Source: Basidiobolus meristosporus CBS 931.73 (lineage: Eukaryota; Fungi; Basidiobolomycota). Taken from it: a DNA stretch of 61,995 nucleotides. The notes beneath the pieces were generated by a model that had not been told where the DNA came from, searched no databases, and saw only the letters and a program-made list of their open reading frames with translations. The position numbers and the translations under genes were made by a program. The DNA is taken from the NCBI GenBank assembly GCA_002104905.1, contig MCFE01000525.1, positions 1 to 61,995 of the forward strand, in the 5' to 3' direction. Within the stretch, counting starts at the first letter, position 1; every line of letters begins with the position of its first letter. Shown here one piece after another: positions 2,571 to 61,995 of the stretch.

Positions 2571-5500
2571 ATGTCGGACAATCCAGAATGGAAGAATGCC
2601 ATGCAGCAAATCCTGGCCCAACAGCAACAGTTACTCCAGATCCTCAGCAAACAGCAACAAGGAATGACTACCATGGCTCAGAGCCAGCAAAGCCCTGTTA
2701 AGAGCAACTTTAGTGTGAAGGTCAACCGGTACCATGGCAGAGTCAATGAAAACCTGGGAACTTGGCTCTTTCAGATTGAAGAAGCTTTTAAAGCTAAAGG
2801 AATTGCTCCAGAAAGCAAGTTGCATTATGCAGCTTCTTACCTGGCAGATTCAGCTTTACAGTGGTACCACAACCAGATCAGGTCAGCCACTATGATGGGA
2901 TGCTCTACAATCTCTACCTGGGATGAGTTTGTGTCGGAAATTCAGGATGCTTTTGAGCCTCCACACCAGCAGACACTACTAAGAAGGAAGTTAAAGACAC
3001 TCAGACAGAAAGGAATGGTGCAAGAATACATCTATGAGTACAGATGTCTACTTGGACAAATCGAAAGAATGGACCCCTTGGATCAAGTTGAATACTTCAT
3101 TGATGGGTTGAAAGAAAGAACTTGCAAGGAAGTGAATTACTGAAGACCTCAGACTATTGAAGAAGCCATCAAGATTGCCATTGACTATGACTCAGCTATG
3201 TTTGGAGTTGGGAAGCCTACAGTGACTGATCAGAAAGGCTACAATCATTATGAAAGAAGACAATCAGAAGCAGTACCAATGGAAATAGATGCTATGCAGA
3301 AGAATTCTACCTCAGAAGAATGTAAGAAGAAAGGACTTTGCTTCAATTGCCACCATCAAGGACATATTGCAAAGCACTGCCCTCAAAGAAGAAATGGACA
3401 CCAGGCAACAAGAACCTTCAACCATATTGAGTCCCATGAACACAGTAATGTGGAAGATCAGCTTGAAGAAGACTCAGAACTCACCTTCCATATAACAGAA
3501 GAGTACTTGTCCCAAATGACCTCAAACTCAGGGAAGTTATTGTACTTGAATGGAGTAATTAATGGAGTACCTGCCAAGATCATGATTGACTCAGGAGCAT
3601 TGCATGAGTACATGTTGGAGCAATTTGCCTTGAAAGCTGGAATCAACTCAGAACCTACCAAATCAACTTCAGTCTCCGCAGCTGATGGGAACTCTCACAT
3701 AATCAATCGTATTACCCCGCCAGTAAGAATGAAGATCAATGACTATGAAGAAGACCTAAAGGCTTATATATTTGGGAACTGCAAGTTTGACCTTGTACTT
3801 GAAAAAACCAGGCTATTTTGTCATAATCCATCAATCAACTGGAGAACCCATGCTACTCAGATCCAAAAAGACAACAAGACCTATGAGCTATTACCTGCCA
3901 GGCTGGATTTTAACTTGGTCAATTCCAGTACGTGTGAGACAAGTGAACTTAGCAAGACCCAGTTCTGTAGAGCACTTAGAAAAGGTATCCAGATGTTCCT
4001 CATGGCTGTATTACAGGAGGATTCCGCTACCCCAGCACCCCAGCAGGTCCAGACTCTCTTGAAGAAATATTTGGACGTGTTTCCAGATGAGCTTGTAAGC
4101 CTACCACCAGTCAGAGACGTGGATCATGCCATTGACACAGGAGATAGCCCTCCAGTGAGCAAGACACCTTACAGAATGAGTCCATTGGAACTGGAGGAAA
4201 TGAAGAGACAAGTTGATTAGCTATTGCAGCAAGGATACATCAGGCCAGCAAGTCACCCTGGGGAGCACCAGTGCTTTTTGTGAAAAAGAAGGATGGAACA
4301 CTTAGGATGTGCATTGACTACAGAGCCCTGAGCTCAGTTACCGTCAAGAATAAGTACCCCATACCTTGGATTGATGAGCTTTTGGACCAACTTAATGGAG
4401 CCACTATTCTCAGCAAGATTGACCTCATGTCAGGATACAACCAAATTAGGGTGAAACCAGAAGATATTCCTAAGACAGCATTTAGGACCAGATATGGACA
4501 TTACAAGTACTTAGTCATGAGTCTTGGCCTCACTAATGCCTCTGCAACATTCATGATGCTGATGCATACTGTCTTTCAGGAGTACTTAGACAAGTATGTG
4601 ATAATCTACCTGGATGACATATTGATATACAGTAAGACAGAAGAGGATCACATAGTGCACATTGAAAAGGTCTTGGAGAAGCTAAGAGAGAACAAGCTAT
4701 ATGGCAAGCTAGCCAAGTGTGAATTCTTCAAGAAACACATTGAATATCTGGGACACATGGTGACTAGCACAAGAGTAACCTTAGACCCTAAGAAGGTTGA
4801 AGTTATTAATAATCTGAAGCAGCCCCATAGCATATCAGAACTCAGATCATTCCTTGGAATGGTTTCCTATTATCAGAGATTTGTCAAGTCTTTTGCAAGT
4901 ATTGCAGTCCCTTTAACTGATATCCTCAAGAATGACAATGCCTATAAGTGGGACATAGCTTGTGAAACTGCCTTCCAGATGCTCAAGCATGAACTTGCTA
5001 AGCTGCCAAGCTTAAGAATACCAGACTTCAGAAAAGAGTTCACTCTGTGCACAGATGCTTCAGATTATGCAATTGGTGGAGTGCTGAGCCAAGAACACAA
5101 GGGAAAGGACTACCCTGTTGCCTTTGAATCCAAGAAACTGAACTCAGCAGAACAAAACTATCCAGTCCATGAGAAGGAGATGCTTGCTATAATACACTGT
5201 TTGAAGACATGGAGATGCTATATTGAAGGAGTCAAATGCACTGTGAAGACTGATCATTCCTCCCTCAAGTATATACTTACTCAGAAGGTACTCTCTAGAA
5301 GAATGACAAGATGGAGTGAATACATTCAGCAATTTGACCTGGAGATTGTCTACTGCCCTGGAAAAAACCAACACGGTTGCTGATGCCTTATCAAGATTAG
5401 ATCAAGTTGCACAACTCAATTTGGTGCATGAATCAGATTGGCCTAGCCTATTACCAAAGTACTTGGAGGACCAAGCCATTCCTAATGAGGTGGATGAAGA

Positions 5501-6707
5501 TATCAAGAAGATGAATCCGTGATGAAGCCAGCAAATTTGTTGTACAGGATGAACACTCTACCAAATTGCTGATGGAAGCCCTATTGCCTATTGCCCTTAT
5601 GTTGCTTGCCTGGATTTAATACATAAGCTACAGAATGGATATGGACATCTTGGGATTGAAGGAACCTATAGTCCTTGTGAAAGCCAGAGCATGGTGGTCC
5701 CAGAATGAAACAAGACATTGAGAAGCTAGGTAAAAACATGCCCAAACTGCCACATCAATCAAGGCCAGCCACAAAGAATTGCCAAACTCTTCCCTTTGGA
5801 GCCTGTAAGACCATTTGAGAGATGGGGAATTGACTTTATTGGAAGACTGCCAACTACCAGGAAATGCAACCGTTGGATCCTAGTAGCTATTGACCATGCC
5901 ACTAAATGGCCAGTTGCTAAAGCTGTACCAATAGCCAGTGAACAAGAAGTTGCAAGTTTCATTTACCATGAGATCCTCATGAAGTTTGGATGCCCTGTGG
6001 AGATCTTATCCAATAGAGGTGCAAACTTTATGGCAAAGACATTAGAGGCTTACCTGGAAATGCAGCAGATCAGACACTTGAAAACCTCGGCATATCACCC
6101 CAGAACTAATGGAGTCACTGAGCGGTTTAATGGATTATTTGGAAAAATGCTGACCAAGTATGCAAATGGAGTTGTCAGTAGATGGGATGAGTATATAGAC
6201 CAAGCACTCTTTGCATGCAGAGTCAGAGTACACAACACCACCCAGCAATCACCATTTTACTTAGTTTATGGATGTGAACCAAGAATCCCAGGAGATCTCA
6301 CACAACCAAAGCTTACAGACACCTTAGAAGATGAACTCAGTCAGCCAAGTAGACACCAGCAACTGGAACACAGACATCAAGAGGCACAGACCAAAGTATC
6401 TCAAAGTGCAGAAAAGATGAAGCAGAGATTTGATAAGACTATAGCACCAGAAGCATTGACAGTTGGGAACTTTGCATTGCTAAGAAACAACACTTGGAAG
6501 AAGTTTGAGCCACAATGGACAAGACCATTCAAGATCATCAGAGAATGTCCATTTGCAACTTACCAACTGGTGGACAAACAAGGTAATATCCGGGAAGACT
6601 TAGTGCATAGGGACAGACTCGAGCGTGCAAGACTTGCTGATAATACTGAACCATCAAGATATTGGTATCACAAGAAAAGAGATTCAGGAGAACCCTCTCA
6701 ACTTTAG
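2571..6707 (+). pseudogene. Ty3/gypsy gag-pol, disrupted
   Basis: Retrotransposon gag, CCHC knuckle CFNCHHQGHIAKHC, protease IDSGA, RT YLDD, RNase H TDASDYAIGGVL, integrase WGIDFIG...NGVTERFN. In-frame TGA at 3141-3143 and TAG at 4218-4220, with frameshifts near 4250 and 5380-5800. Confidence 0.93.
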
Positions 6708-24492: not shown

Positions 24493-27400
24493 TCAAGCCA
24501 GTGCGATCTCTACAGGGGGCGCAGGACGGACCTGTTTGAAGGCCCGTTGTTTGACCCCTCCTTTCACCGGGAGTCGAGTATTGCCCACCAGGAAGTCGTC
24601 CACCTCACGGGCCGCCTCTCGGCCTTCATTGATCCCCCAAACAATCAAACTCTGACCACGTCGGCAGTCTCCGGCTGCGAAAACCCCGGGAAGGCTGGTA
24701 CCGTACTTCCCGACCGAGGTTTCGATCGTGGTGTTCCGGTTCGTGCGAAGGTCCAGACTCTGGATCAGCTTCTCCTCAGGCCCGAGGAAGCCCATAGACA
24801 GGAGGACCAGGTCAGCCGGGAAGAACTGCTCGCTTCCGGGGACTTCCTCCATCTTCCACCGGCCCTCGTCGTCTTTGGCCCACGCCACCTTCACGGTGTT
24901 GATCCCTTTCACGCGGCCGTTACCGTCGGAGACGAACTCCTTCGATAGGATACAGTACTCCCGAGGGTCTTTACCGTACTGCAATTGCACCTCGGAATGA
25001 CCGTAATCGACCTTGAACACCCGTGGGAATTGTGGCCATGGGTTGTCTTTGGCCCGCTGAGCGGGTGGTTGCGGAAGGAGCTCGAAGTTGGTGATGGACA
25101 AGGCACCATGTCGAGCCGAAGTCCCGATACAGTCGCATCCAGTATCGCCACCGCCGATCACGACAACATGTTTTCCCTTGGCATCGATGTACTTCTTGTT
25201 CTCTAGATTCGAGTCGAGTAGACTTTGGGTGTTCATCTGCAGGAACTCCATGGCAAAGTGGATCCCATCCAAGTGTCGATTAGGGATGGGCAGGTCTCGT
25301 GGCCAGGTGGCACCGGTAGCCAGCAACACCGCGTCATTACTTTGCCGGATTTCATGGGCATCCACATTGACCCCGACATTCGCATTCGGAACAAAAGTGA
25401 TCCCTTCGGCAGCCAGGAGGTCAAGACGGCGCTGGACCACCTTCTTGTCAAGCTTCATATTGGGGATACCATACATTAAAAGGCCGCCCATACGATCGTT
25501 TCTATCGTACACGGTGACCGTGTGGCCTGCCTTATTAAGCTGGTCAGCAGCAGCAAGACCAGCAGGACCGGATCCGATGATGGCAACCTTCTTGCCCGAG
25601 CGGCTGGAGGGGGGTCTAGGAACTATCCACCCCTTCTCAAAACCACGATCAATTATAGCTGCTTCTATGCTCTTGATGCTGACAGGTTTTTCGTTGATCC
25701 CTAGCACACATGCCCCCTCACAAGGAGCAGGGCAAACTCGGCCGGTGAATTCGGGGAAGTTGTTGGTCATCATCAACCTATCCAGAGCGTCCTTCCACTG
25801 GTCTTGGAATACCAACTCATTCCACTTGGGAATGATGTTACCAATGGGACAGCCACTGTCAGATTGGCAGAATGGAACCCCGCAATCCATACAACGAGCT
25901 GCTTGGGTGCGAAGCTCATCCTTTGTCAGGCGATTGTTCACCTCCTTCCAATCCTTGAGCCTCTTTTGAGGGCTACGATAAACATCGCCTCTTCTCTTGT
26001 ACTTCATGAACCCTTTGAGTTTATCCAGGTTGGCGACTCGTTTCTTTTGAGCCTCCTCATCGAAAGCTGCATCCTCAATATCCATGATGGTTGGCTCGTG
26101 TGCCCGGGGTGGATGAATGTCAAGCTCCTCTACACTCTGCAGAAGTTTCTGGTCGATTCTCTCCTGTTGTTGGCGTTGCTCCAACTGCTTCTGCTCCTCC
26201 AGCGCCTTCTTGTAGTCAACGGGCATCACGCGAACAAACTTCGGAAGAATTTGGGCGAAATTCTTTAGAACACGATCCGCCACACCAGAGCCAGTAAAGT
26301 AAAGATGATCCTCAATGGTGCTCCTCAGGAACTTGATCTCCTCGGCATCATTTACAGTCTCGAGATCAACCATCTCGGAATTACATTTTTGCTTGAAGTC
26401 CCCATCTACGTCGAGGACGTAAGCAATACCACCACTCATGCCAGCAGCGAAATTACGTCCTGTAGCTCCCAAAATGATCACTCGGCCACCAGTCATGTAT
26501 TCACAACCATGATCGCCTAGCCCTTCAACCACGGCGGTGGCACCAGAGTTACGGACGCAGAATCTCTCAGCAGCGATACCTCGAATGAAGACTCTGCCAC
26601 CAGTAGCGCCATAGAGGCACACATTGCCCACAATCACGTTTTCCTCGGGCTTGAAGGAGGAATTGGATGGCGGATAGATAACAACGCACCCTCCCGAAAG
26701 ACCCTTACCAACGTAATCGTTTGAATCACCCTCCAGCTCCAGGGTGACTCCAGGAGCCAAGAAGGCGCCGAAACTTTGACCGGCCGAGCCGGTCAACTTC
26801 ACATGGACCGTACCATCTGGCAAACCTTTCTCGCCATACCGCTTGGAAATTTGATAGCTGAGAGTGGCACCCACTGCACGATCAGTATTCACCACCTTTC
26901 CTTCGATATAGACAGAGTCTCCATCGGTTAACGCAGGTTCGGCTTCAAAGATCAGCTTGTTGTCAAGACGCACATGCAGCATATGATCTTGCTTGCGAGT
27001 GTTCACAGTGTCAACACCCTTGCGCAATTCATGAGCAGGGATGAGGATGGGCGATAGATCGAGATTCTTTGTCTTGAAGTTCTTGACAGCCTCATTCACT
27101 TTCAGGCACTCAACGTGGCCCACCATTTCGGTGATTGTACGGAAACCAAGTTTAGCCATGATCTCCCGTAACTCCTCTGCAACGTAGTAGAAGAAATTGA
27201 TGACGTGCTCAGGACTACCTTCGAACTTCTTCCGGAGCTCAGGGTCTTGGGTGGCAATACCGACTGGACATGTATTAAGGTGGCACTTGCGCATCATAAT
27301 GCATCCCATAGCAATAAGAGGGGTGGTAGCAAAGCCCCACTCTTCAGCACCTAGCAGACATGCAATGGCCACATCACGCCCGGTTTTGATTTGTCCATCC

Positions 27401-30400
27401 GTCTGTACTACGACGCGACCTCGTAGATCATTCAAAACCAGGGTTTGATGTGTTTCAGCAAGTCCTAGCTCCCAGGGAAGACCTGCATATCGAATACCAG
27501 TCCAACGACTGGCACCGGTACCACCATCATGACCTGAGATCAAAATATGATCGGCTTTGGCCTTGGCAACACCAGCGGCAACGATACCAACACCAACCTC
27601 CGATACCAATTTCACCGAAACCCTGGCGCGAGGGTTGGAGCATTTCAGGTCGTAGATGAGTTGCTTTAGATCTTCGATTGAGTAGATATCGTGGTGGGGA
27701 GGTGGCGAAATCAGCCCGACACCCGGGGTTGATTTTCTTGTTTTGGCAATATTGCCGCTAACTTTGTGCCCTGGTAGTTCACCACCTTCACCGGGCTTGG
27801 CACCTTGGGCCATCTTGATCTGGAGCTCGTCGGAGTCGGACAAATAATACGATGTAACACCGAATCGTCCAGAAGCAACCTGCTTGATAGCCGAACGCAA
27901 CAGGTCACCATTCGACTGGGTTTGGGAACGTTCTGGGTCCTCACCACCTTCACCGGTATTACTCTTGCCACCCAATTTATTCATGGCAATAGCAAGTGAG
28001 GAGTGTGCCTCATACGAAATAGAGCCGTAGCTCATGGCTCCCGTACAGAATCGTTTGACGATCTCTGTCCAAGGTTCTACCTCCTCAATAGGGATTCCTT
28101 TCTTGTTCGAAAAGTCGAAATCAAGCATCCCACGGAGAGTGCAGTTCTTAATCGCCTCGTAGGATTTGGCAGAGTATTCTCGGTATGCGTTTGTGTTTTT
28201 CGTACGGACCGCATCCTGAAGATTGGCAACAGCAGCAGGCTCATTAATGTGAGCTTCGCCACCAACTCTCCAATGATACTCACCAGCCTCGGGTAGCCCT
28301 TTTTGAGTAACCGTTTCCCTGCTAGGGAAACCTCTCTCATGCAATTCAATAGCGTCCATGGCCAGTAACTCAAATCCTACACCTTTGATTCTGCTTGCGG
28401 TACCAGCGAAGCACCTGTCGACCACGGCGTTGTCAACACCCAGGGCTTCAAATATTTGTGCGCCTTTGTAGCTTTGTAGGGTAGATATGCCCATTTTGGA
28501 CATCACCTTCAGAATCCCGTCATTGCAAGCTTTACGATAATTGTATACAATGCTCTCGTCGGTAATTTTTTCCCTTAGAGCATTCTCCCTACGCAGCTTG
28601 AGCATTGCGTCAATAGCAAGATAAGGACAAATAGCATCAGCGCCATAGCCTAGCAGAACGCACAAGTGATGGACTTCTCTGGCTTCTCCAGTTTCCACCA
28701 TCAAGGCCACCTTAGATCTCTGCTTGTTGCGAACCAAGTGATGATGAACTCCTCCGCACGCTATCAATGCGCTGATTGGGACACGAGTCGGCCCGATGTT
28801 TTTATCGGAGAGAATAACAATCTTGTACCCTTCGGCAATGCACTGGGAAACCTCTTCACATATGCGCTCCAGACCCATGGTGTACCCATTTACCCCCTCA
28901 CTCTTCTCGAACGTGATATCGATAGTAGATACACGCCAGTCTTTGTTGTAAGCATTTATCTCCTTGATGGCGTTGAATGCTTCTATGGATAGGATTGGGG
29001 ATGGCAGACAAAGCTTTCGGCACTGGCTTTCGTTCATTTCGAGAATGTTTCCTTCGGGGCCAACATAGCACTCAAGTGACATCACGATATTCTCTCGAAT
29101 AGGGTCAATGGGAGGATTGGTGACTTGAGCGAATAACTGTCTGAAATAGTCGTACACCGAGCGAGGTTGATTAGATAAGCAGGCCAATGCGGTATCATTC
29201 CCCATGGATCCTAAGGCCTCCTTTCCATCTCGCATCATTGGTGTCATCAGCAGATTCAATTGTTCAAAGGTTAAGCCGAACGCCAACGCCTTAGGGTCCT
29301 CCGCAATTCGAACATTGTCAGGCTCATAGCTTCTCCAGGTTCCATTATCATTAGACCACTCTTTCAATGATTCGAGTGTGAGCATGTTCTCGGCGGTCCA
29401 TTTGGCGAAATCATTACGGCCAGCCACCTTCATTTTCAGTTCCTCATCGTCCACAACCCGACCTTCAAGTGTGTCAACCAGTAGCATTTTTCCTGGCTGG
29501 AGTCTTCCCTTGAAGAGGATATCTTCCGGATTTATTTCGATGGTTCCGACCTCACTGGCGCATATCATCCGCTCATCCTTGGTGATATAGTAACGGCATG
29601 GACGAAGCCCATTTCGGTCAAGATTTGCGCCACAGTAACGACCATCCGAAAAAGTGAAAAGAGCCGGTCCATCCCAAGGCTCCATCAAGCAGGCAGCCCA
29701 TTCATAAAATGCCCGCTTTTCTGGCGCAATATACGGATTGTTTTGCCATGCCTCGGGTACCATCATCATCACAGCCTCAGGGAGGGAGAGCACGCCGTTG
29801 ATAACCAATAATTCGAGGACATTATCGAACGCTGCAGAATCGGAGCCACCTTCCTCGATGATGGGATATAGCTTTTCCAAATCCAGGCCGAATTTTTCAC
29901 TCTTCATGATGCCCTCTCTAGCACGCATCCAGTTCTTGTTTCCACGTAGTGTATTGATTTCACCGTTATGAGCACACCAGCGCATGGGCTGAGCTCTATC
30001 CCAACTCGGGAAGGTATTGGTGGAGAACCGGGAGTGCACAAGAGCAAAATGACTAGAGTACGCCACGTTGTTGAGATCGTAGTAGTAGCTGTACACCTGG
30101 GATGGAGAAAGTTGGCCTTTATAGACAATGTTCTTGCTTGACAAGGAGCAGATGTAGAACCACTTCTCGTAGGAGATCGCATGTGTCGCACTCTTGCGCA
30201 ACACATAAAGCTGCCTCTCAAAGTACGCTGGATCGAACTCCTCCCTGTTCAAGACTACAAATGGCTGCATCACGACAGGCTCCCTGGATTTTGCGCTGGG
30301 TCCGAGAATGGTATTATCACAAGGCACTTTTCGCCAGCCCAACACTTTCAAATCGTGCTCGAGGGCGACCTGCTCAAAGGTCCGTAGACTGTCATTTCGA

Positions 30401-30753
30401 ATCTCCTCGTCCGGGTGGAAAAAAAGGTTTCCTACGGCGTAATGGCCGCATTCAGGTAGTTCAATTCTCAGATCGCGAGTGGTTTCATTGATAAAGAATT
30501 GGTGAGGGATTCCGGTCATCACACCAGCTCCATCACCATCCCTGACATCGGAACCAACTGCACCACGATGAGTCATGTTACACAATACTGGTTTGGCATC
30601 TTTAACGATTTTGTGACTGGCAACCCCTTTGATTTGAACAATGAAGCCAACTCCACAAGCATCTTTCTCAAAATCGGGATTGTATAAGCCTTTGGCTTCG
30701 GGGATAGCGCCAGCCCAGGTGCAGTTACGGCTATTGGTGGTAGGTGTAGACAT
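24493..30753 (-). CDS. GLT1: NADH-dependent glutamate synthase (eukaryotic fused alpha/beta GOGAT), 2086 aa, intronless
   Basis: N-terminal KDACGVGF (catalytic Cys), HSRFSTNTFPSW, QGAKPGEGG, Fe-S motif CIMMRKCHLNTCPVG, beta-subunit RCMDCGVPFC, and FAD/NADH motifs IIGSGPAG and VIGGGDTG. Confidence 0.98.
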   Translation of the reverse strand: MSTPTTNSRNCTWAGAIPEAKGLYNPDFEKDACGVGFIVQIKGVASHKIVKDAKPVLCNMTHRGAVGSDVRDGDGAGVMTGIPHQFFINETTRDLRIELPECGHYAVGNLFFHPDEEIRNDSLRTFEQVALEHDLKVLGWRKVPCDNTILGPSAKSREPVVMQPFVVLNREEFDPAYFERQLYVLRKSATHAISYEKWFYICSLSSKNIVYKGQLSPSQVYSYYYDLNNVAYSSHFALVHSRFSTNTFPSWDRAQPMRWCAHNGEINTLRGNKNWMRAREGIMKSEKFGLDLEKLYPIIEEGGSDSAAFDNVLELLVINGVLSLPEAVMMMVPEAWQNNPYIAPEKRAFYEWAACLMEPWDGPALFTFSDGRYCGANLDRNGLRPCRYYITKDERMICASEVGTIEINPEDILFKGRLQPGKMLLVDTLEGRVVDDEELKMKVAGRNDFAKWTAENMLTLESLKEWSNDNGTWRSYEPDNVRIAEDPKALAFGLTFEQLNLLMTPMMRDGKEALGSMGNDTALACLSNQPRSVYDYFRQLFAQVTNPPIDPIRENIVMSLECYVGPEGNILEMNESQCRKLCLPSPILSIEAFNAIKEINAYNKDWRVSTIDITFEKSEGVNGYTMGLERICEEVSQCIAEGYKIVILSDKNIGPTRVPISALIACGGVHHHLVRNKQRSKVALMVETGEAREVHHLCVLLGYGADAICPYLAIDAMLKLRRENALREKITDESIVYNYRKACNDGILKVMSKMGISTLQSYKGAQIFEALGVDNAVVDRCFAGTASRIKGVGFELLAMDAIELHERGFPSRETVTQKGLPEAGEYHWRVGGEAHINEPAAVANLQDAVRTKNTNAYREYSAKSYEAIKNCTLRGMLDFDFSNKKGIPIEEVEPWTEIVKRFCTGAMSYGSISYEAHSSLAIAMNKLGGKSNTGEGGEDPERSQTQSNGDLLRSAIKQVASGRFGVTSYYLSDSDELQIKMAQGAKPGEGGELPGHKVSGNIAKTRKSTPGVGLISPPPHHDIYSIEDLKQLIYDLKCSNPRARVSVKLVSEVGVGIVAAGVAKAKADHILISGHDGGTGASRWTGIRYAGLPWELGLAETHQTLVLNDLRGRVVVQTDGQIKTGRDVAIACLLGAEEWGFATTPLIAMGCIMMRKCHLNTCPVGIATQDPELRKKFEGSPEHVINFFYYVAEELREIMAKLGFRTITEMVGHVECLKVNEAVKNFKTKNLDLSPILIPAHELRKGVDTVNTRKQDHMLHVRLDNKLIFEAEPALTDGDSVYIEGKVVNTDRAVGATLSYQISKRYGEKGLPDGTVHVKLTGSAGQSFGAFLAPGVTLELEGDSNDYVGKGLSGGCVVIYPPSNSSFKPEENVIVGNVCLYGATGGRVFIRGIAAERFCVRNSGATAVVEGLGDHGCEYMTGGRVIILGATGRNFAAGMSGGIAYVLDVDGDFKQKCNSEMVDLETVNDAEEIKFLRSTIEDHLYFTGSGVADRVLKNFAQILPKFVRVMPVDYKKALEEQKQLEQRQQQERIDQKLLQSVEELDIHPPRAHEPTIMDIEDAAFDEEAQKKRVANLDKLKGFMKYKRRGDVYRSPQKRLKDWKEVNNRLTKDELRTQAARCMDCGVPFCQSDSGCPIGNIIPKWNELVFQDQWKDALDRLMMTNNFPEFTGRVCPAPCEGACVLGINEKPVSIKSIEAAIIDRGFEKGWIVPRPPSSRSGKKVAIIGSGPAGLAAADQLNKAGHTVTVYDRNDRMGGLLMYGIPNMKLDKKVVQRRLDLLAAEGITFVPNANVGVNVDAHEIRQSNDAVLLATGATWPRDLPIPNRHLDGIHFAMEFLQMNTQSLLDSNLENKKYIDAKGKHVVVIGGGDTGCDCIGTSARHGALSITNFELLPQPPAQRAKDNPWPQFPRVFKVDYGHSEVQLQYGKDPREYCILSKEFVSDGNGRVKGINTVKVAWAKDDEGRWKMEEVPGSEQFFPADLVLLSMGFLGPEEKLIQSLDLRTNRNTTIETSVGKYGTSLPGVFAAGDCRRGQSLIVWGINEGREAAREVDDFLVGNTRLPVKGGVKQRAFKQVRPAPPVEIALA

Positions 30754-55403: not shown

Positions 55404-56451
55404 TCAGAACAGAGCTCCATAGGCCAGCATTCCAACCGCCATGGAGGCCAAGAAAACCAACGGGCCTGCTGCCCCGGATGCCACTGCACCCACTATAGCG
55501 GGCCCAGGGCACACTCCGGCAAGCCCCCAGCCAACGCCAAAGATGGACGCACCGGTGATAAGCTTCTGGTCGATAACTGTGGAGGTGGGGATTTCGAACT
55601 GGGGAGCAAGCGCAGGCTTGGCCGCTTGTTTCACCGATTTCTGGTACAGGATGCCGTAAGGGATCAGTCCGCCGAGGGCAACAAATGCAAGCGATGGATC
55701 CCAGCTGGGGGACAGGATTCTCAAGAAGTTGAGCACCTTGGCGGGATCGGACATCCCAGAAATAGATAACCCTAAAGAGAAGAAAAATCCCGAAAGCAGG
55801 GCAGTAATGTGTCGAGCATTAACAGACTCGATGGCGTTCTGGTCGGCGAGTTTACGAACCATGCGATATGCTAGGATGGCCAAATATGGAAGCCCCAACA
55901 GCCCAACTGCTGCAGGGATTGAGGGTAGCTGAAGTGCAGTTGAGCCTTCGGCCAGGGTGTCTGGATAAAGTTTGTTCATGAGGTTGGCCGTGATAAGCCC
56001 TGTGGAGAAGAAAGTCGCAGTGGCAACAATCGAGCGTGGGGAGAGTCGAGACACACCACAAATCATGTGTCCGCTTGTGCATCCGGAGCCTAGCTATAGG
56101 TTCATACAAGGGAGAGAAAGGTCACAGTTAGAGCGCTGATTCTCAAGTACGGCCCAACTTCAATTCGCTACTTACTCGACTGCCAAAGCCTACTAGGAGT
56201 CCGCCAATGATGGGGATCACTTCGCTTGGCTGCACGAACGCTGGTGGTGCAGGGCCGAACAATCTAACCAAGATGGCAGAGGACGCCATTCCGGACAAGA
56301 AATAGATCCGCCAAACGCCCTCTTCGCCACCCTTCACACTACCGGCGAAAATACCACTAGCCCCCATGATGCGGCCGTTGCAAGTGAGTAGCTGGTATGC
56401 CGCAGTGCTCAGCAACAATCCGCCAGCGAGCGATTCTACAGGTGTGAACAT
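55404..56451 (-). CDS. YeeE/YedE-family (thiosulfate/sulfur transport) membrane protein, ~321 aa, intron 56094-56175
   Basis: [14 protein letters not shown]...[10 protein letters not shown]; spliced [29 protein letters not shown]; [23 protein letters not shown]; [15 protein letters not shown]. Confidence 0.9.
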
Positions 56452-56681
56452 TTTTATGGTTTTCGTTGAGATGGGTGGAGTTGAAACGTTTGAAGCCTTC
56501 CACAAAACTATAAATATTATTCTCGATGGGCCAGAGAATGTTCGCGGCGTGACTGCATCTGGTCGCAACAAATTTGCAACGCGGCTAATTCGAGTCATTG
56601 AAGGCCATTACTAATCAACTTTCGCCAATTCATTCAGCAATATTGCCTTATGCAAACATCGCTATTCAAGTATCAAGATAA

Positions 56682-58049
56682 ATGAAGCTAGTTCGGATAA
56701 TGGATTTCCCTGAGGTGCATCATCCTTCCCATATACGGCGGTTTTGGTCGCCAATGGGGTACATTGCTGCAACCACTACCATAATAGTCCACGTGTTACG
56801 ACCTTTACTTCCACCTCATGGCTATTCGCACTCCTACGCACATGGAACTTCCTTATCTGTGCTTAGTGTTTATATTACAAATGCTGTACAAGGACCGGAG
56901 AATACGGAACGTGGCTTTGGAATGAAATATCTTAGCTTTCGTAACCTTGTCACGCTCGTTGCCCTCCAACTTGCCCATTGCGCACACCTTTCCAGCCAAG
57001 TGCAGAAACGATCATAGCCTGGGACTTATGCCTACATGCGTATATCAGGCATGGGACGGTGGAATGGTGTATCCAAAGATTTAGCGTTCCTGGTAATCGA
57101 AGCTTAGGTACTACCAGCATTCATGAGTACACGGGTCATAGAAATCCTGGTGCCTTGGATACAAATCGAATGGTGCTCAATTTGACTTATCAGTCATGCT
57201 TACTGCGTTTTTAATCTTTGTAAACTTCGCATGTAACTTCAGCACTTCTTGACATCTTATCCCATACTAGAAGGGTCACTGAGTGGAACTGTCATTTTTC
57301 AACTACTTCGTATACATGGATTAAGTGATATTTTAATATTGCCTGGAAAGTTTAACCAAATACTCCAATCTACGGGGCACAGGTTGAGTGATGGGTTATT
57401 GCTGCTTCGGTTGATAAAGCGCTTGGTCAACAAGTTGGGTAGCGCATTGACAGTGTCCGATGATTGTAGCTTGGAAATATCAAGCCCATGTAGCCCCATC
57501 AGTAAAACATACAATACAACAGTCATAATTGGTTATTTGCTATGCAATCATCTCCAGCCAACAACAATAGCATTAGTTGACAATCGCAATTTATTTGCCT
57601 ACAAATGAGCTTATGCAAGGCTTCAACCTTTCATCAATCAAACTAAGAGACAAGTGCGTTGATTCAACTGTCAGTGGTATAAGTATAGGCTCCGTCATGA
57701 GCGGCAGAGTAGGGTGCGTCAAGGTAAGTCAGTCTGTCCAACATTCAGGTTCATCGGGCTAAATTGGCCTATTTTATAACACGTAGATCTTACAATGGCA
57801 AACTACCCTTTCAGCCGAGAATTCACTGATGAGGCCTTGGACAATAATGGACACAAGAGCTACTCCGAAAATGGAATGACCTTCTGTGTTGCAAGAGACA
57901 CAGGGACAACTCCAGAATACCACTACTCCTGGGGGAAGCTCGAAGAAAAGTTCAGAAATCGGCAGAACCTTAAGGGATACATCATGTCAAGTGGAGCTTT
58001 ACTATCTGGTGAGACTAAGAGACACACTACGCTCAGTTCAGATATGTGA
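56682..58049 (+). pseudogene. Possible decayed spliced gene of unknown function
   Basis: Track ORFs 56682-57017 and 57249-57608 share a frame with about 6 stops over ~347 codons. Donor AG|GTAAGT at ~57723 and acceptor CACGTAG at ~57788 join in frame to ORF 57795-58049. No recognisable domain. Confidence 0.3.
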
Positions 58050-59159
58050 ACGTGAATAAACAGTTTCTATATTGAAAGATGTCGGTTGTCCAAAGTAGGT
58101 TTATTGAGTATCTAAGAAAGCAACCAGTATTGTGCACATATACACTTGTAACCTGTACGCAAATCAATTTTAGCGTATTTTTAGCATATTTCAACATATT
58201 TTAGGGTGGATATTATGTCTAATTCCTGGCCACTGCAGTTGACAGGTAAAACATGCACCGTCACTGATGTCCAATTAGCAGTGGAGCGCTCTACTGGTTT
58301 GCTCTACTGTTTACAACCATGGGGGAATTGCTTCATTGGTACTAAACAGCTATGCGAAAATTGCTAACAAATACTACATGCGCACAGACCTAATCAGCAC
58401 TATCAACGTCATAACACTCAAGAGCAATGACCAACAACAGACAAATATATGCGTAGGTACTGTGTTTACTGAACAGCTTGGGGTTAGGGCGATAAGCATG
58501 GGCGATAAGCATAATGGATATTCTTAGCGTCATAATACCGTAGTGTTGAGTCACCGTCTGGGCGGAATAGATGTAAAGCAGCAGTTGTGGACTTGTCTGT
58601 CTTAAGACTTATTGCACTCCACTCCCTCAGCCATGGTATCCGATCAAGAAGCCTGTTTGTATTCTGCTGATGTCAGAGAAGAAATTGCCAGAGCTAATAA
58701 CGGGAACTACGCCTCAGTCACAGTCAAAGGGATTTGCTGGACTTAGAGAGGACCCGGAACTGGCGAGCTGTCCTACAAGCAGATCCTTGAAGGGAGAAAG
58801 GGGAACGCCTGCGTGGATAGCCAGACATGGGTAATCTTGTAGGGTTCGGTTGGTGCTTGCGTAGCCGGTGGACTCTTGGAGATGTTACTGATAAGGATAT
58901 TTAGCTGAAGCATTGTGAAATAAATTCATCCAAATCCGCATTCCTTTGACCTAGCTGTATTATGCTCATTGCACTGTGAGCATCTAACATATGTGTGAAT
59001 TGCTACTTTGATTGTCCAAGTGTAGCGTGAAACCAGAGTTTTGCCCGACCATGCTTTTGATCAGATATTGTGTACAACTGCATCCTAAATAACCTTGAGA
59101 CCATGAAGCAGAACACCACTTTGAGTCTGTAACAGCTATGTAAGTGCCAAAGAAACCAA

Positions 59160-59290
59160 CAAAACACAGTGACTACCTGGCATGTGGATGTAGAACTATG
59201 TTACACACTCTGTGGCCAACTATAGGTCTGCTGTGCCCCTCTGGCTCACTATGGCACTAGTTGGCACTCATGGTTCAATGTGGCGCTATC
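59160..59290. repeat. Unclassified dispersed repeat (copy 2)
   Basis: Homologous to 19850-20000 in the same orientation. Confidence 0.6.
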
Positions 59291-59674
59291 CAATGGAATA
59301 AGTCTATTATATGGTTCTATTGGTTTGGCTAAACTTACAGCTTTCAGTATCTCAGGTTCTATTGTTTTTACAGACAAGGATAAATATTTTCTAGGAGGTG
59401 AACAGGGTGAATAATCATTCCACAAGATTTGGTAATATGCTATTGTGACATTCTCACTTGGCAGGTGTGGGACAAGTATTACTGTTGGAAGCACTAACCT
59501 AAGGTTGATGATTCTGTAAACAGAATAGGAAATTTTAAAGGCGCCTCAATTATACCTTTTTCGAATAACTGTCACACAGATACAACATGCTTTACAATAC
59601 ACTTGAAAGAAAACGATGCAATATCTAAGAGAGTGTTATTGTAGGGATATGTAGATTTCAAGAGTCAATGGCAA

Positions 59675-60420
59675 CTACTTCAACGAGTATTCTTGGCGTA
59701 ATTTACCTCTTAAAAGCTTGCCCAAGGTATTTTTAGTTGCTGTACATTTTGATAGACGTGCAGTGCTTGTGTGCAGAACGGGATTTTCTCTTGGACAGTT
59801 TTTCTTCAGATACCGGGAACGAAAACAGATATGTTGAACAAATGATTTCCAAAACAGTTGGAATGTTTGTACTTCAGGACGCCTACACTGGATAATATGT
59901 CTGTTACACGGGATAATATACAACAAAGGATAATAAGCCTGCTACACGGGATAAGCTACTATTTTGGGTTTATTTCCCAATTTGTCCAAGTTGTGAACAC
60001 GATTGAAAATCCATTTTATACTCCGAATACGTGGTAAATGAAGATCAGCAACTCAACCGCAGATTTTGATAAACTATTAAAATTCCAGATAGTCGGCCAA
60101 ACAATAACAAGCAGCAAAATGTCGATGGATCCTGCCATACAAACTCCATCACAATCGAACAAACATACATTTACCTAGATTCCTTGATAAATCTGGCAAA
60201 GTTGTGTACATCAGGGTCACCAAGGATCAATCTCTAAGTGGGTGTTGTGAAGTGTCAGGAGTAGCCTTGTTCTAAAGTGAAGAACTCTGATGGAATAAGG
60301 AAAGCGCCCAAATGCATTAAGGACAGCATGTCTGTATGGTGAGGCAGGCACATCTGGAGCCATAGAGTAGAGGCAATACACTGCGAACTTGACCAACCTG
60401 GTATAGTCACTTTTAGACTA
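59675..60420 (-). pseudogene. Possible decayed intron-containing gene of unknown function
   Basis: Minus strand: exon RLILGDPDVHNFARFIKES bounded by CTTAG and GTAAAT, then a 43-nt GT-AG intron, then a frame RIHRHFAACYCLADYLEF** with scattered stops running into ORF 59675-59926. Confidence 0.3.
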
Positions 60421-60512
60421 AGGGTCAAGTTTGTAGTATCCGTATTAAGCCAACTTTTGTATTTAAAGAAATAAGGAAAGTATCAAGGAAGTTATGAGTT
60501 ATTGGCAAATCA

Positions 60513-60628
60513 TTAGTGATTGATTTACAATGCACCAAGATCATTTTTGGTTAGTGATTGATTTACAATGCATCAAGATCATTTTTGGTTAGTGATTGAT
60601 TTACAATACACTGAGATCATTTTTGGTT
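60513..60628 (+). repeat. 38-bp tandem repeat, 3 copies
   Basis: TTAGTGATTGATTTACAAT(G/A)CA(CCA/TCA/CTG)AGATCATTTTTGG x3, head-to-tail with no spacers. Confidence 0.93.
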
Positions 60629-60897
60629 ACCTAAGAGAAATCCAAGGCGTAGAGAAACCAAAAGTGGATGCTTACCTAAATGGGGTCAGACACCTGAATA
60701 GGGAGCTGCTGTTGATATAATGCCTATCTGGAGATGACCACCCTAGAGGACACCCTAACATTGCGACGATAATGCATTCTAAAAATCAACGGTAATCCAT
60801 TGTAGATATACCAAATTGCCTCAGATTATTAAGCGGTCCTTCATATAAATTGTCCCTGTCAGCATCATATACATCAGGACGATTGAAACAAGCAGAT

Positions 60898-61995
60898 ATG
60901 AGATACGTAATTATTGGAGGTGTAGCCGGTGGAGCCACAGCAGCCGCCCGGTTGAGAAGAGCAGATGAGTTGGCCGAAATCATTCTATTGGAGAAGGGGC
61001 CCCATATCTCTTACGCCAACTGTGGTTTGCCGTATTATATAGGCGGTGTCATTGTCGATCGTGCTAAGCTGCTGTTGCAGACCCCGGAATCGTTCGGCAA
61101 GCGTTTCCGTATTGACGTGCGGATACAGAGTGAGGTAACCGGCATTCATCCAGCGAATAAAACCCTGACAATCCGTAAGGCAAGCGGGGAAGAATACACA
61201 GAGAGCTATGACAAGCTTTTGTTGTCTCCTGGTGCCAATCCCGTCAAACCACCTTTGGATGGTATCAACTCGGAAGGTATCTTTACGTTACGCAATGTGG
61301 AAGATACGGACCATATCAAGGCCTATATCGCTGAGAAGCAGGTGAAGCGCGCCGTCGTTGTAGGAGCAGGATTTATCGGACTCGAGATGGCAGAGAGCTT
61401 ACATCGTGCCGGTGTGGCCATTTCCGTAGTAGAGATGGGCAATCAAGTTATGGCACCTATTGACTTTTCTATGGCTGCGTATATTCATCAACACTTGACT
61501 CAAAAAGGGGTATCTCTTTACCTTGAAGAAAGTGTGACGCACTTTCATCGCACAGAGAGCGGCCTGATCGTTTTCCTAAAGAGTGGGAATGCTATTCCGG
61601 CCGATATGGTGTTATTATCTATCGGCGTGCGTCCATCAACAGAATTGGCGCAGCAAGCAGGCTTGAGGTTAGGAGAGACGGGTGGCATCTGGGTGGATGA
61701 GCACTTGGAAACATCCCAAAAGGATATCTATGCAGTGGGTGATGCCATTGAATATCCCCATCCGTTGACCAAGAAGCCGTGGCTCAATTACCTTGCCAAT
61801 CCTGCCAATCGCCAAGGTCGAATTGTGGCTGATAACATGGTATTTGGTAATACTGTCTCTTATGAGGGAGCAATCGGCACTTCAATTGCCAAGGTATTCG
61901 ACATGACCGTGGCATCTACGGGACTTGCAGCCAAGCGTCTGAAGCAACTGGGTATGGAATACCAGAGCTCAGTAACTCACTCCTCCTCCCATGCT
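60898..61995 (+). CDS. Bacterial-type CoA-disulfide/CoA-persulfide reductase (FAD-dependent pyridine nucleotide-disulfide oxidoreductase), 3' end outside the window
   Basis: Manual translation gives 366 open codons: MRYVIIGGVAGGATAAARLRRADE..., redox motif SYANCGLPYY, YDKLLLSPGA, NAD(P)H motif VVVGAGFIGLEMAE, second FAD motif TSQKDIYAVGDA, LANPANRQGR. No introns. Absent from the ORF track, presumably because it has no stop inside the window. Confidence 0.95.
   Translation, partial: MRYVIIGGVAGGATAAARLRRADELAEIILLEKGPHISYANCGLPYYIGGVIVDRAKLLLQTPESFGKRFRIDVRIQSEVTGIHPANKTLTIRKASGEEYTESYDKLLLSPGANPVKPPLDGINSEGIFTLRNVEDTDHIKAYIAEKQVKRAVVVGAGFIGLEMAESLHRAGVAISVVEMGNQVMAPIDFSMAAYIHQHLTQKGVSLYLEESVTHFHRTESGLIVFLKSGNAIPADMVLLSIGVRPSTELAQQAGLRLGETGGIWVDEHLETSQKDIYAVGDAIEYPHPLTKKPWLNYLANPANRQGRIVADNMVFGNTVSYEGAIGTSIAKVFDMTVASTGLAAKRLKQLGMEYQSSVTHSSSHA

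Follow-up and report, generated by a model that had tools for sequence, protein, structure and literature searches.

The window analysed here is a stretch of 61,995 nucleotides (nt), contig MCFE01000525.1 of the fungus Basidiobolus meristosporus CBS 931.73 (assembly GCA_002104905.1), and it ends in an open frame of bacterial type at positions 60898-61995 of the plus strand. This frame very probably represents the 5' 1.1 kb of one paralogue from a subtelomeric gene family that goes back to an old transfer from Bacteroides to Basidiobolus. The gene resembles those for coenzyme A (CoA)-persulfide reductases, proteins in which a CoA-disulfide reductase (CoADR) core is followed by a rhodanese domain, and in this family also by a TusA domain. 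An earlier annotation made from the letters of the window (hereafter the first-pass annotation) had described a single odd gene at a contig end; it is really a truncated copy from a family that numbers about 9-10.

The open frame and its protein family

Translation of 60898-61995 gave 366 codons with zero stops, in a frame that reaches the end of the contig, and the first-pass annotation was right about both the uninterrupted frame and its start coordinate. Upstream of 60898 the frame stays open to 60796 and contains no in-frame ATG; the protein therefore starts at the strand that binds flavin adenine dinucleotide (FAD) and has no space for a targeting peptide. The description of the gene as intact can be upheld for these first 366 codons only, since the contig ends, which is also why this copy stops before the dimerisation domain. 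The gene had further been reported as missed by the list of open reading frames (ORFs). It is indeed absent from that list, trivially, because frames running off an end are omitted, but the public annotation holds a 366-amino-acid (aa) partial product for it (P0001).

The 366 codons belong to a CoA-persulfide-reductase-like gene of the CoADR-rhodanese-TusA type, subfamily A, and according to profile and structure matches they encode its FAD- and NAD(P)H-binding domains. The motif GGVAGG at residues 7-12 (60916-60933) conforms to the N-terminal FAD-binding GxGxxG fold, and GAGFIG at residues 156-161 (61363-61380) to the NAD(P)H-binding one. The Pfam domains Pyr_redox_2 and Pyr_redox span residues 2-285 (E 1.4e-62) and 151-222 (E 1e-16), respectively. 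The motif SYANCGLPY (residues 38-46) fits the single redox-cysteine pattern S-[FY]-A-N-C-G-L-P-Y. Its redox-active Cys42, encoded at 61021-61023 on the plus strand, aligns with the cysteine of SFANCGLPY in Bacillus anthracis CoADR-rhodanese (PDB 3ICR) and Shewanella Npsr (3NTD), and also with the motif cysteine of Npsr 3NTA and of the Enterococcus faecalis CoA-persulfide reductase (CoAPR, 8A56). It is kept in all fungal and Bacteroides copies of the alignment. The best NCBIfam model was TIGR03385, CoA-disulfide reductase (E 1.6e-116, model positions 2-364 of 439), and the closest solved structure for the 366-residue fragment was 3ICR (E 2e-115), both of which bear out the family that the first-pass annotation had named from the three motifs.

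At least six further copies of the gene were found in B. meristosporus CBS 931.73, and two in Basidiobolus ranarum (GCA_040143965.1, independently sequenced; KAK9700965.1 and KAK9763619.1). Subfamily A includes the window copy and two relatives from the same assembly: it is 98.5% identical at the nt level to an intact 652-aa copy on contig MCFE01000991 (L081) and 99.2% identical to a frameshifted copy on MCFE01000509 (L086). The latter carries a 1-nt insertion after nt 359 that the window copy does not have. Subfamily B is represented on four contigs (L082-L085), with 82-83% nt identity to the window; three of its copies (L082-L084) are intact at 643 aa, and the fourth, L085, is frameshifted after codon 466. 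On L083 the gene lies 6 kb from a fungal Zn-cluster transcription factor gene.

The full-length paralogues have the Pfam domain order FAD/NAD(P)H, dimerisation, rhodanese and TusA, and for one of them the matches to the solved relatives 3ICR, 3NTA and 8A56 had E values from 1e-149 to 5e-172, the best being that to 3ICR. In L081 and subfamily B, Pyr_redox_dim occupies residues 331-432 and Rhodanese residues 463-544; the equivalents in the window copy would lie past 61995. The rhodanese cysteine of these copies is retained in the sequence LYCIIGLRG or LFCAIGLRG, and every intact fungal copy keeps all three of Cys42, the rhodanese Cys and the Cys of the TusA CPGP motif. The first-pass annotation had noted that anaerobe versions of the family often carry rhodanese (and TusA/DsrE-like) domains at the C-terminus, and the full-length relatives do carry rhodanese and TusA.

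Chromosome-end context and bacterial origin

The DNA immediately upstream of the gene had been described as about 4 kb of eroded, AT-rich sequence. Its composition agrees with this: over the 3.9 kb at 57000-60897 the GC content is 0.41 and the observed/expected (o/e) CpG ratio 0.52, against 0.495 and 0.86 in the gene, and no ORF of more than 120 aa was listed there. It is in fact a subtelomeric repeat common to chromosome ends. In blastn comparisons, 57456-61995 is colinear with L081 and L086; the flank (57456-60897) aligns in blocks of 81-87% identity and the gene at 98.5-99.2%. On both sister contigs the gene is followed by a minus-strand glutathione S-transferase (GST) gene, after which the contig terminates in (TTAGGG)n. 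The telomere repeats begin 7.6 kb past the gene start on L081 and 5.7 kb past it on L086. The first-pass annotation had asked whether the downstream sequence continues as a bacterial operon, and none is present on these two contigs.

The GST gene lies at 12177-12988 on L081 and 12165-12976 on L086, about 200 nt downstream of the subfamily-A gene and convergent with it; it probably follows the truncated copy of the window as well. Within the repeat flank of the window, tandem repeat finder located a 38-nt tandem repeat at 60513-60629. A very high-copy element occupies about 58.4-59.4 kb, where the word depth in DNA runs rises to about 28,000 against 150 for single-copy sequence, corresponding to roughly 100-200 copies. 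The last single-copy host DNA before the repeat, at 56000-57578, bears a spliced fungal gene on the minus strand with an 82-nt GT..AG intron at 56094-56175.

Short-read (Logan) contigs were examined from sequencing runs that included two DNA runs (X1 and X2) and a further run (X3). The X1 and X2 contigs show 0 differences from the window over the single-copy DNA, have a depth of about 150 and terminate at 57578. Further downstream, one X1/X2 contig spans 60803-61033 and hence crosses the ATG. The first-pass annotation had proposed a check of the junction and of coverage, and a coverage step is present: in the DNA-run contigs the depth is about 540 in the gene and about 150 in the single-copy flank, a ratio that fits 3-4 copies of subfamily A. 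Contigs extend past the window end by 438 nt in X3 and 120 nt in X1. The end of the published contig within the gene most likely reflects the difficulty of assembling through near-identical copies that sit at several chromosome ends. Across the gene, the X1/X2 contigs bear the letters of L081/L086 and not those of the window; absence of the window copy was considered as the cause and rejected, and the pattern is instead read as the assembler having kept the majority path among near-identical copies.

The 5' edge of the bacterium-derived segment falls at 60886-60897 on the plus strand, the only upstream stretch with alignable counterparts both at Bacteroides loci and in the remaining fungal subfamilies. 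Matches in blastn begin at 60883-60898 for Bacteroides and at 60885-60896 for subfamily B and B. ranarum. No bacterial neighbour genes were found at the window locus or at the retrieved paralogue loci, and the fungal subfamilies all share only a segment with the approximate gene coordinates -13 to +1920. The corresponding Bacteroides proteins (814-832 aa, from B. fluxus, B. muris and B. clarus among others; L001-L026) are 85-87% identical in aa over the 366 residues and agree with the fungal proteins in their motifs and, as far as TusA, in the order of their domains. They differ in having a C-terminal DrsE_2 domain of about 170 aa, whereas the fungal copies terminate in the TusA-DsrE linker; no DsrE remnant was found by tblastn in the fungal loci. 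The two groups of loci also differ in their surroundings, since they have no flank or neighbour gene in common and the fungal genes are multi-copy near telomeres. The shared end in the linker past TusA points to one breakpoint inside the donor gene.

In a maximum-likelihood tree (67 rows, 368 columns) the nine Basidiobolus copies formed one clade (100/99) nested among genus Bacteroides, with no single sister lineage picked out. Subfamilies A and B of B. meristosporus grouped together (95/83) and the B. ranarum copies fell outside them. The nearest source, according to both the protein search and the tree, is thus the genus Bacteroides, in keeping with the resemblance to Bacteroidales that the first-pass annotation had suggested. 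When one genome for each of 185,579 bacterial and archaeal species was searched, the best match had 87% aa and 79% nt identity, and in a search of 5.8 billion protein clusters the top bacterial one reached 88% aa identity. The comparison with bacteria and fungi, which had been proposed as a check, therefore gave no near-100% bacterial match.

The first-pass annotation had offered a choice between a recent bacterium-to-fungus transfer and a chimeric join or contaminant. The transfer stands but its recency does not, given nt identities of at most 79% to bacteria and the divergence at synonymous sites (dS) among the fungal copies. This amounts to about 1.0-1.15 between subfamilies A and B and to 0.63-0.81 between B. 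meristosporus and B. ranarum; between fungal copies and Bacteroides it is saturated. Outside the gene, the flanks of the B. ranarum copies showed no detectable synteny with those of B. meristosporus, which is uninformative either way because it is expected at a dS of about 0.7-1. A search with the host gene GLT1, intended for dating against host genes, gave no B. ranarum orthologue and only a paralogue in the same genome with saturated synonymous sites. Transfer from fungus to bacterium was ruled out, as members of the family occur across Bacteroidota and enclose the fungal clade. The fungal copies thus nest in their donor group, and on L081, L083 and L086 they are linked to host DNA; the gene also occurs in two host species that were sequenced independently of each other, and it evolves there under selection.

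These data are most simply explained by one old transfer to an ancestral Basidiobolus and later duplication. The transferred piece would have comprised about 1.93 kb of a Bacteroides gene, from about 12 nt 5' of the ATG through the linker past TusA, and the DsrE domain would have been left behind. The gene would then have been amplified near chromosome ends, maintained by strong purifying selection and transcribed. More tentatively, Basidiobolus subtelomeres in general might be landing and amplification sites for bacterial genes.

Two other elements lie near the subfamily-B copies. About 5-6 kb downstream of them, at 17213-17575 on L082 and 17762-18124 on L083, is a gene whose 120-aa product contains a Protoglobin domain (Pfam E 1.8e-9). 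The Protoglobin family is mainly prokaryotic, and this could be another acquired gene in the region. Directly 5' of the subfamily-B copies, a tandem array on the minus strand (L082 200-9011, L084 1-9006 and L085 1-9011) consists of 7-8 diverged units of about 1 kb each that are 75-97% alike; each unit has one small called gene of about 120-155 aa without a Pfam match.

Predicted function, expression and alternative readings

The likely function of the full protein, judged by analogy with characterised relatives, is that of a cytosolic CoA-persulfide or polysulfide reductase using NAD(P)H and FAD. E. faecalis CoAPR (8A56), Shewanella Npsr (3NTA/3NTD) and B. anthracis CoADR-rhodanese (3ICR) have the same order of FAD/NAD, dimerisation and rhodanese domains, and both the redox Cys in S-x-A-N-C-G-L-P-Y and the rhodanese Cys are found in them as in the fungal family. 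They differ in that the fungal and Bacteroides proteins add TusA and that the host is here a eukaryote. E. faecalis CoAPR clears toxic CoA persulfide to CoASH and H2S; its C42 and rhodanese C508 are both required, and in the proposed mechanism the pantetheine arm of the bound CoA swings from one site to the other (PMC9405070).

By homology, the fungal protein would probably be a cytosolic homodimeric flavoenzyme in which NAD(P)H reduces FAD and Cys42 forms a mixed disulfide with CoA. The rhodanese Cys would capture sulfane sulfur, which would be reduced to H2S with regeneration of CoASH, and the TusA Cys would act as an additional sulfane-sulfur carrier. Loss of DsrE would take one carrier out of the Bacteroides relay. 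In an amphibian or reptile gut rich in sulfide, such an enzyme could protect the CoA pool.

It is also possible, though we consider it unlikely, that the protein is mainly a plain CoA-disulfide reductase, or an NADH oxidase/peroxidase for defence against oxygen or peroxide, and not a persulfide/polysulfide reductase. Among NCBIfam models, equivalogs for CoA-disulfide reductase score best and a model for an H2O-forming NADH oxidase is matched too, and the top PDB match, from B. anthracis, was deposited as a CoA-disulfide reductase. All scores nevertheless lie under the equivalog cut-offs. The TIGR03385 cut-off of 578.8 bits was not reached by the fragment (389.7 bits), by the full-length fungal proteins L081 (478) and P0002 (482.7) or by the Bacteroides protein L003 (488.3), and a strict CoA-disulfide reductase equivalog was rejected on the 478-488 bits of the full-length proteins. 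Moreover, the rhodanese and TusA domains and their Cys are retained under purifying selection (full-length dN/dS, the ratio of nonsynonymous to synonymous divergence, 0.08-0.11), as expected for sulfane-sulfur handling, and the solved homologues 3NTA and 8A56 are persulfide reductases. By resemblance, the gene would belong in the CoADR-rhodanese/persulfide reductase subgroup and not among strict CoADRs.

A further alternative accepts the transferred family but regards the window copy as a decaying, non-functional pseudogene, the other paralogues doing the work. This appears improbable. Of the seven copies retrieved, L085 and L086 are broken, and it is the broken L086 that the window copy resembles most; yet all 366 visible codons of the window copy are open, without the L086 insertion, and dN/dS against L081 is 0.14. 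Between fungal copies in general, dN/dS ranged from 0.05 to 0.14 over the 366 codons, and in subfamily A the gene is 98.5-99.2% identical where the directly upstream flank is 85-87% identical. These values indicate that the gene has been kept under strong purifying selection.

The X3 contigs also speak against decay. An X3 contig omits 56094-56175 (CT..AC on the plus strand), so that the 82-nt minus-strand GT..AG intron of the neighbouring fungal gene is skipped, and an Illumina adapter is present as well; this run accordingly looks RNA-derived. X3 contigs match 61005-61995 with 0 differences, carry the letters of the window at 61230, 61287, 61500 and 61518, where L081 and L086 differ, and run on past the window as noted above. 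If X3 is taken as RNA-like, the window copy, or an identical unassembled one, is transcribed. Another RNA-like X3 contig, which covers 60907-61034 at a depth of 212, has 12 mismatches to the window in 128 positions, the window's own variant having a depth of 36-50. A more diverged paralogue, perhaps of subfamily B, may be expressed several-fold higher.

Bacterial contamination, or a misassembly that fused Bacteroides DNA to the end of a fungal contig, is an exceedingly improbable source of the frame: the extreme contig-end position behind an unbridged repeat, the differing depth of gene and flank and the kinship with gut Bacteroides would suit it, but the flank-plus-gene unit recurs on two other contigs amid fungal repeats, a GST gene and telomere repeats, a DNA-run contig crosses the ATG, the depth ratio matches the copy number, similarity to Bacteroides ends 12 nt 5' of the ATG without bacterial neighbours, the fungal genes all break off in one domain linker, where no Bacteroides gene ends, copies of an independently sequenced second species fall in the same clade, and identity to the bacterial sequences found stays within 88% aa and 79% nt.

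Several points weigh against an old, functional Bacteroides-derived gene at this locus. The 3.3 kb of repeat between the single-copy DNA and the gene is not spanned by any short-read contig, the gap lying at 57578-60803, which leaves the published assembly as the basis for placing this copy on this particular chromosome arm. The 3' 40% of the copy lies beyond the window and could be broken as in L086. X3 is recorded only as 'DNA?', its RNA nature being deduced from its contigs, and no RNA run was found in the run search. As to function, bit scores that stay below the cut-off even at full length make the assignment of a substrate tentative, and equally tentative is any role given to the TusA domain, which here lacks its DsrE partner.

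Transfer of bacterial genes into Basidiobolus is broadly published. The main text of Tabima et al. 2020 (PMC7466969) puts the share of bacterial-looking gene models in Basidiobolus at 2-5%, with sources that include CFB/Bacteroidetes; 806 candidates were reported in CBS 931.73, on scaffolds also bearing fungal genes, and the bacterial genes were tied to life in amphibian and reptile guts. That main text centres on secondary-metabolite genes, does not contain the word 'rhodanese' and does not present the chromosome-end location, amplification, domain loss or selection analysis of the present family. Our literature search returned no paper pairing Basidiobolus with rhodanese, disulfide reductase or persulfide, and a search combining CoA-disulfide reductase, gene transfer and eukaryotes gave nothing relevant. 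The family is new and uncharacterised in the literature found.

Taken together, chromosome-end context, a second host species, monophyly, purifying selection and a breakpoint within a multidomain gene make this a clean, well-controlled case of bacterium-to-fungus transfer. If the enzyme is active, CoA-persulfide detoxification, which in the literature found is described for prokaryotes only, would also take place in a eukaryote that shares the gut with the donor. The family might then be the first eukaryotic CoA-persulfide/polysulfide reductase, a Bacteroides gene that was trimmed of DsrE, adjusted to expression in a eukaryote and multiplied at chromosome ends in adaptation to a vertebrate gut rich in sulfide; we put this forward tentatively, as a fair chance that falls short of an even one. 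Its amplification at chromosome ends would add an example of fungi expanding acquired genes. For genome curation, the gene at this contig end is to be kept and not filtered as contamination.

Other elements of the window and genome

The window also contains a Ty3/Gypsy-type retrotransposon at 2571-6707 on the plus strand, with gag, aspartyl protease, reverse transcriptase-RNase H and integrase ORFs. Its CpG o/e is 0.04-0.15, as compared with 0.7-0.9 in host genes. This depletion suggests decay that is methylation-driven or like that of repeat-induced point mutation.

The GLT1 gene mentioned above is an intronless ORF of 2086 aa at 24493-30753 on the minus strand, and it has a full-length paralogue in the same genome (MCFE01000130, L089 501-6755). 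The two are 85% identical in aa and 75% in nt, with saturated synonymous sites, and represent an old duplicate of a usually single-copy gene. This duplicate may hint at an ancient genome duplication or at hybridity.

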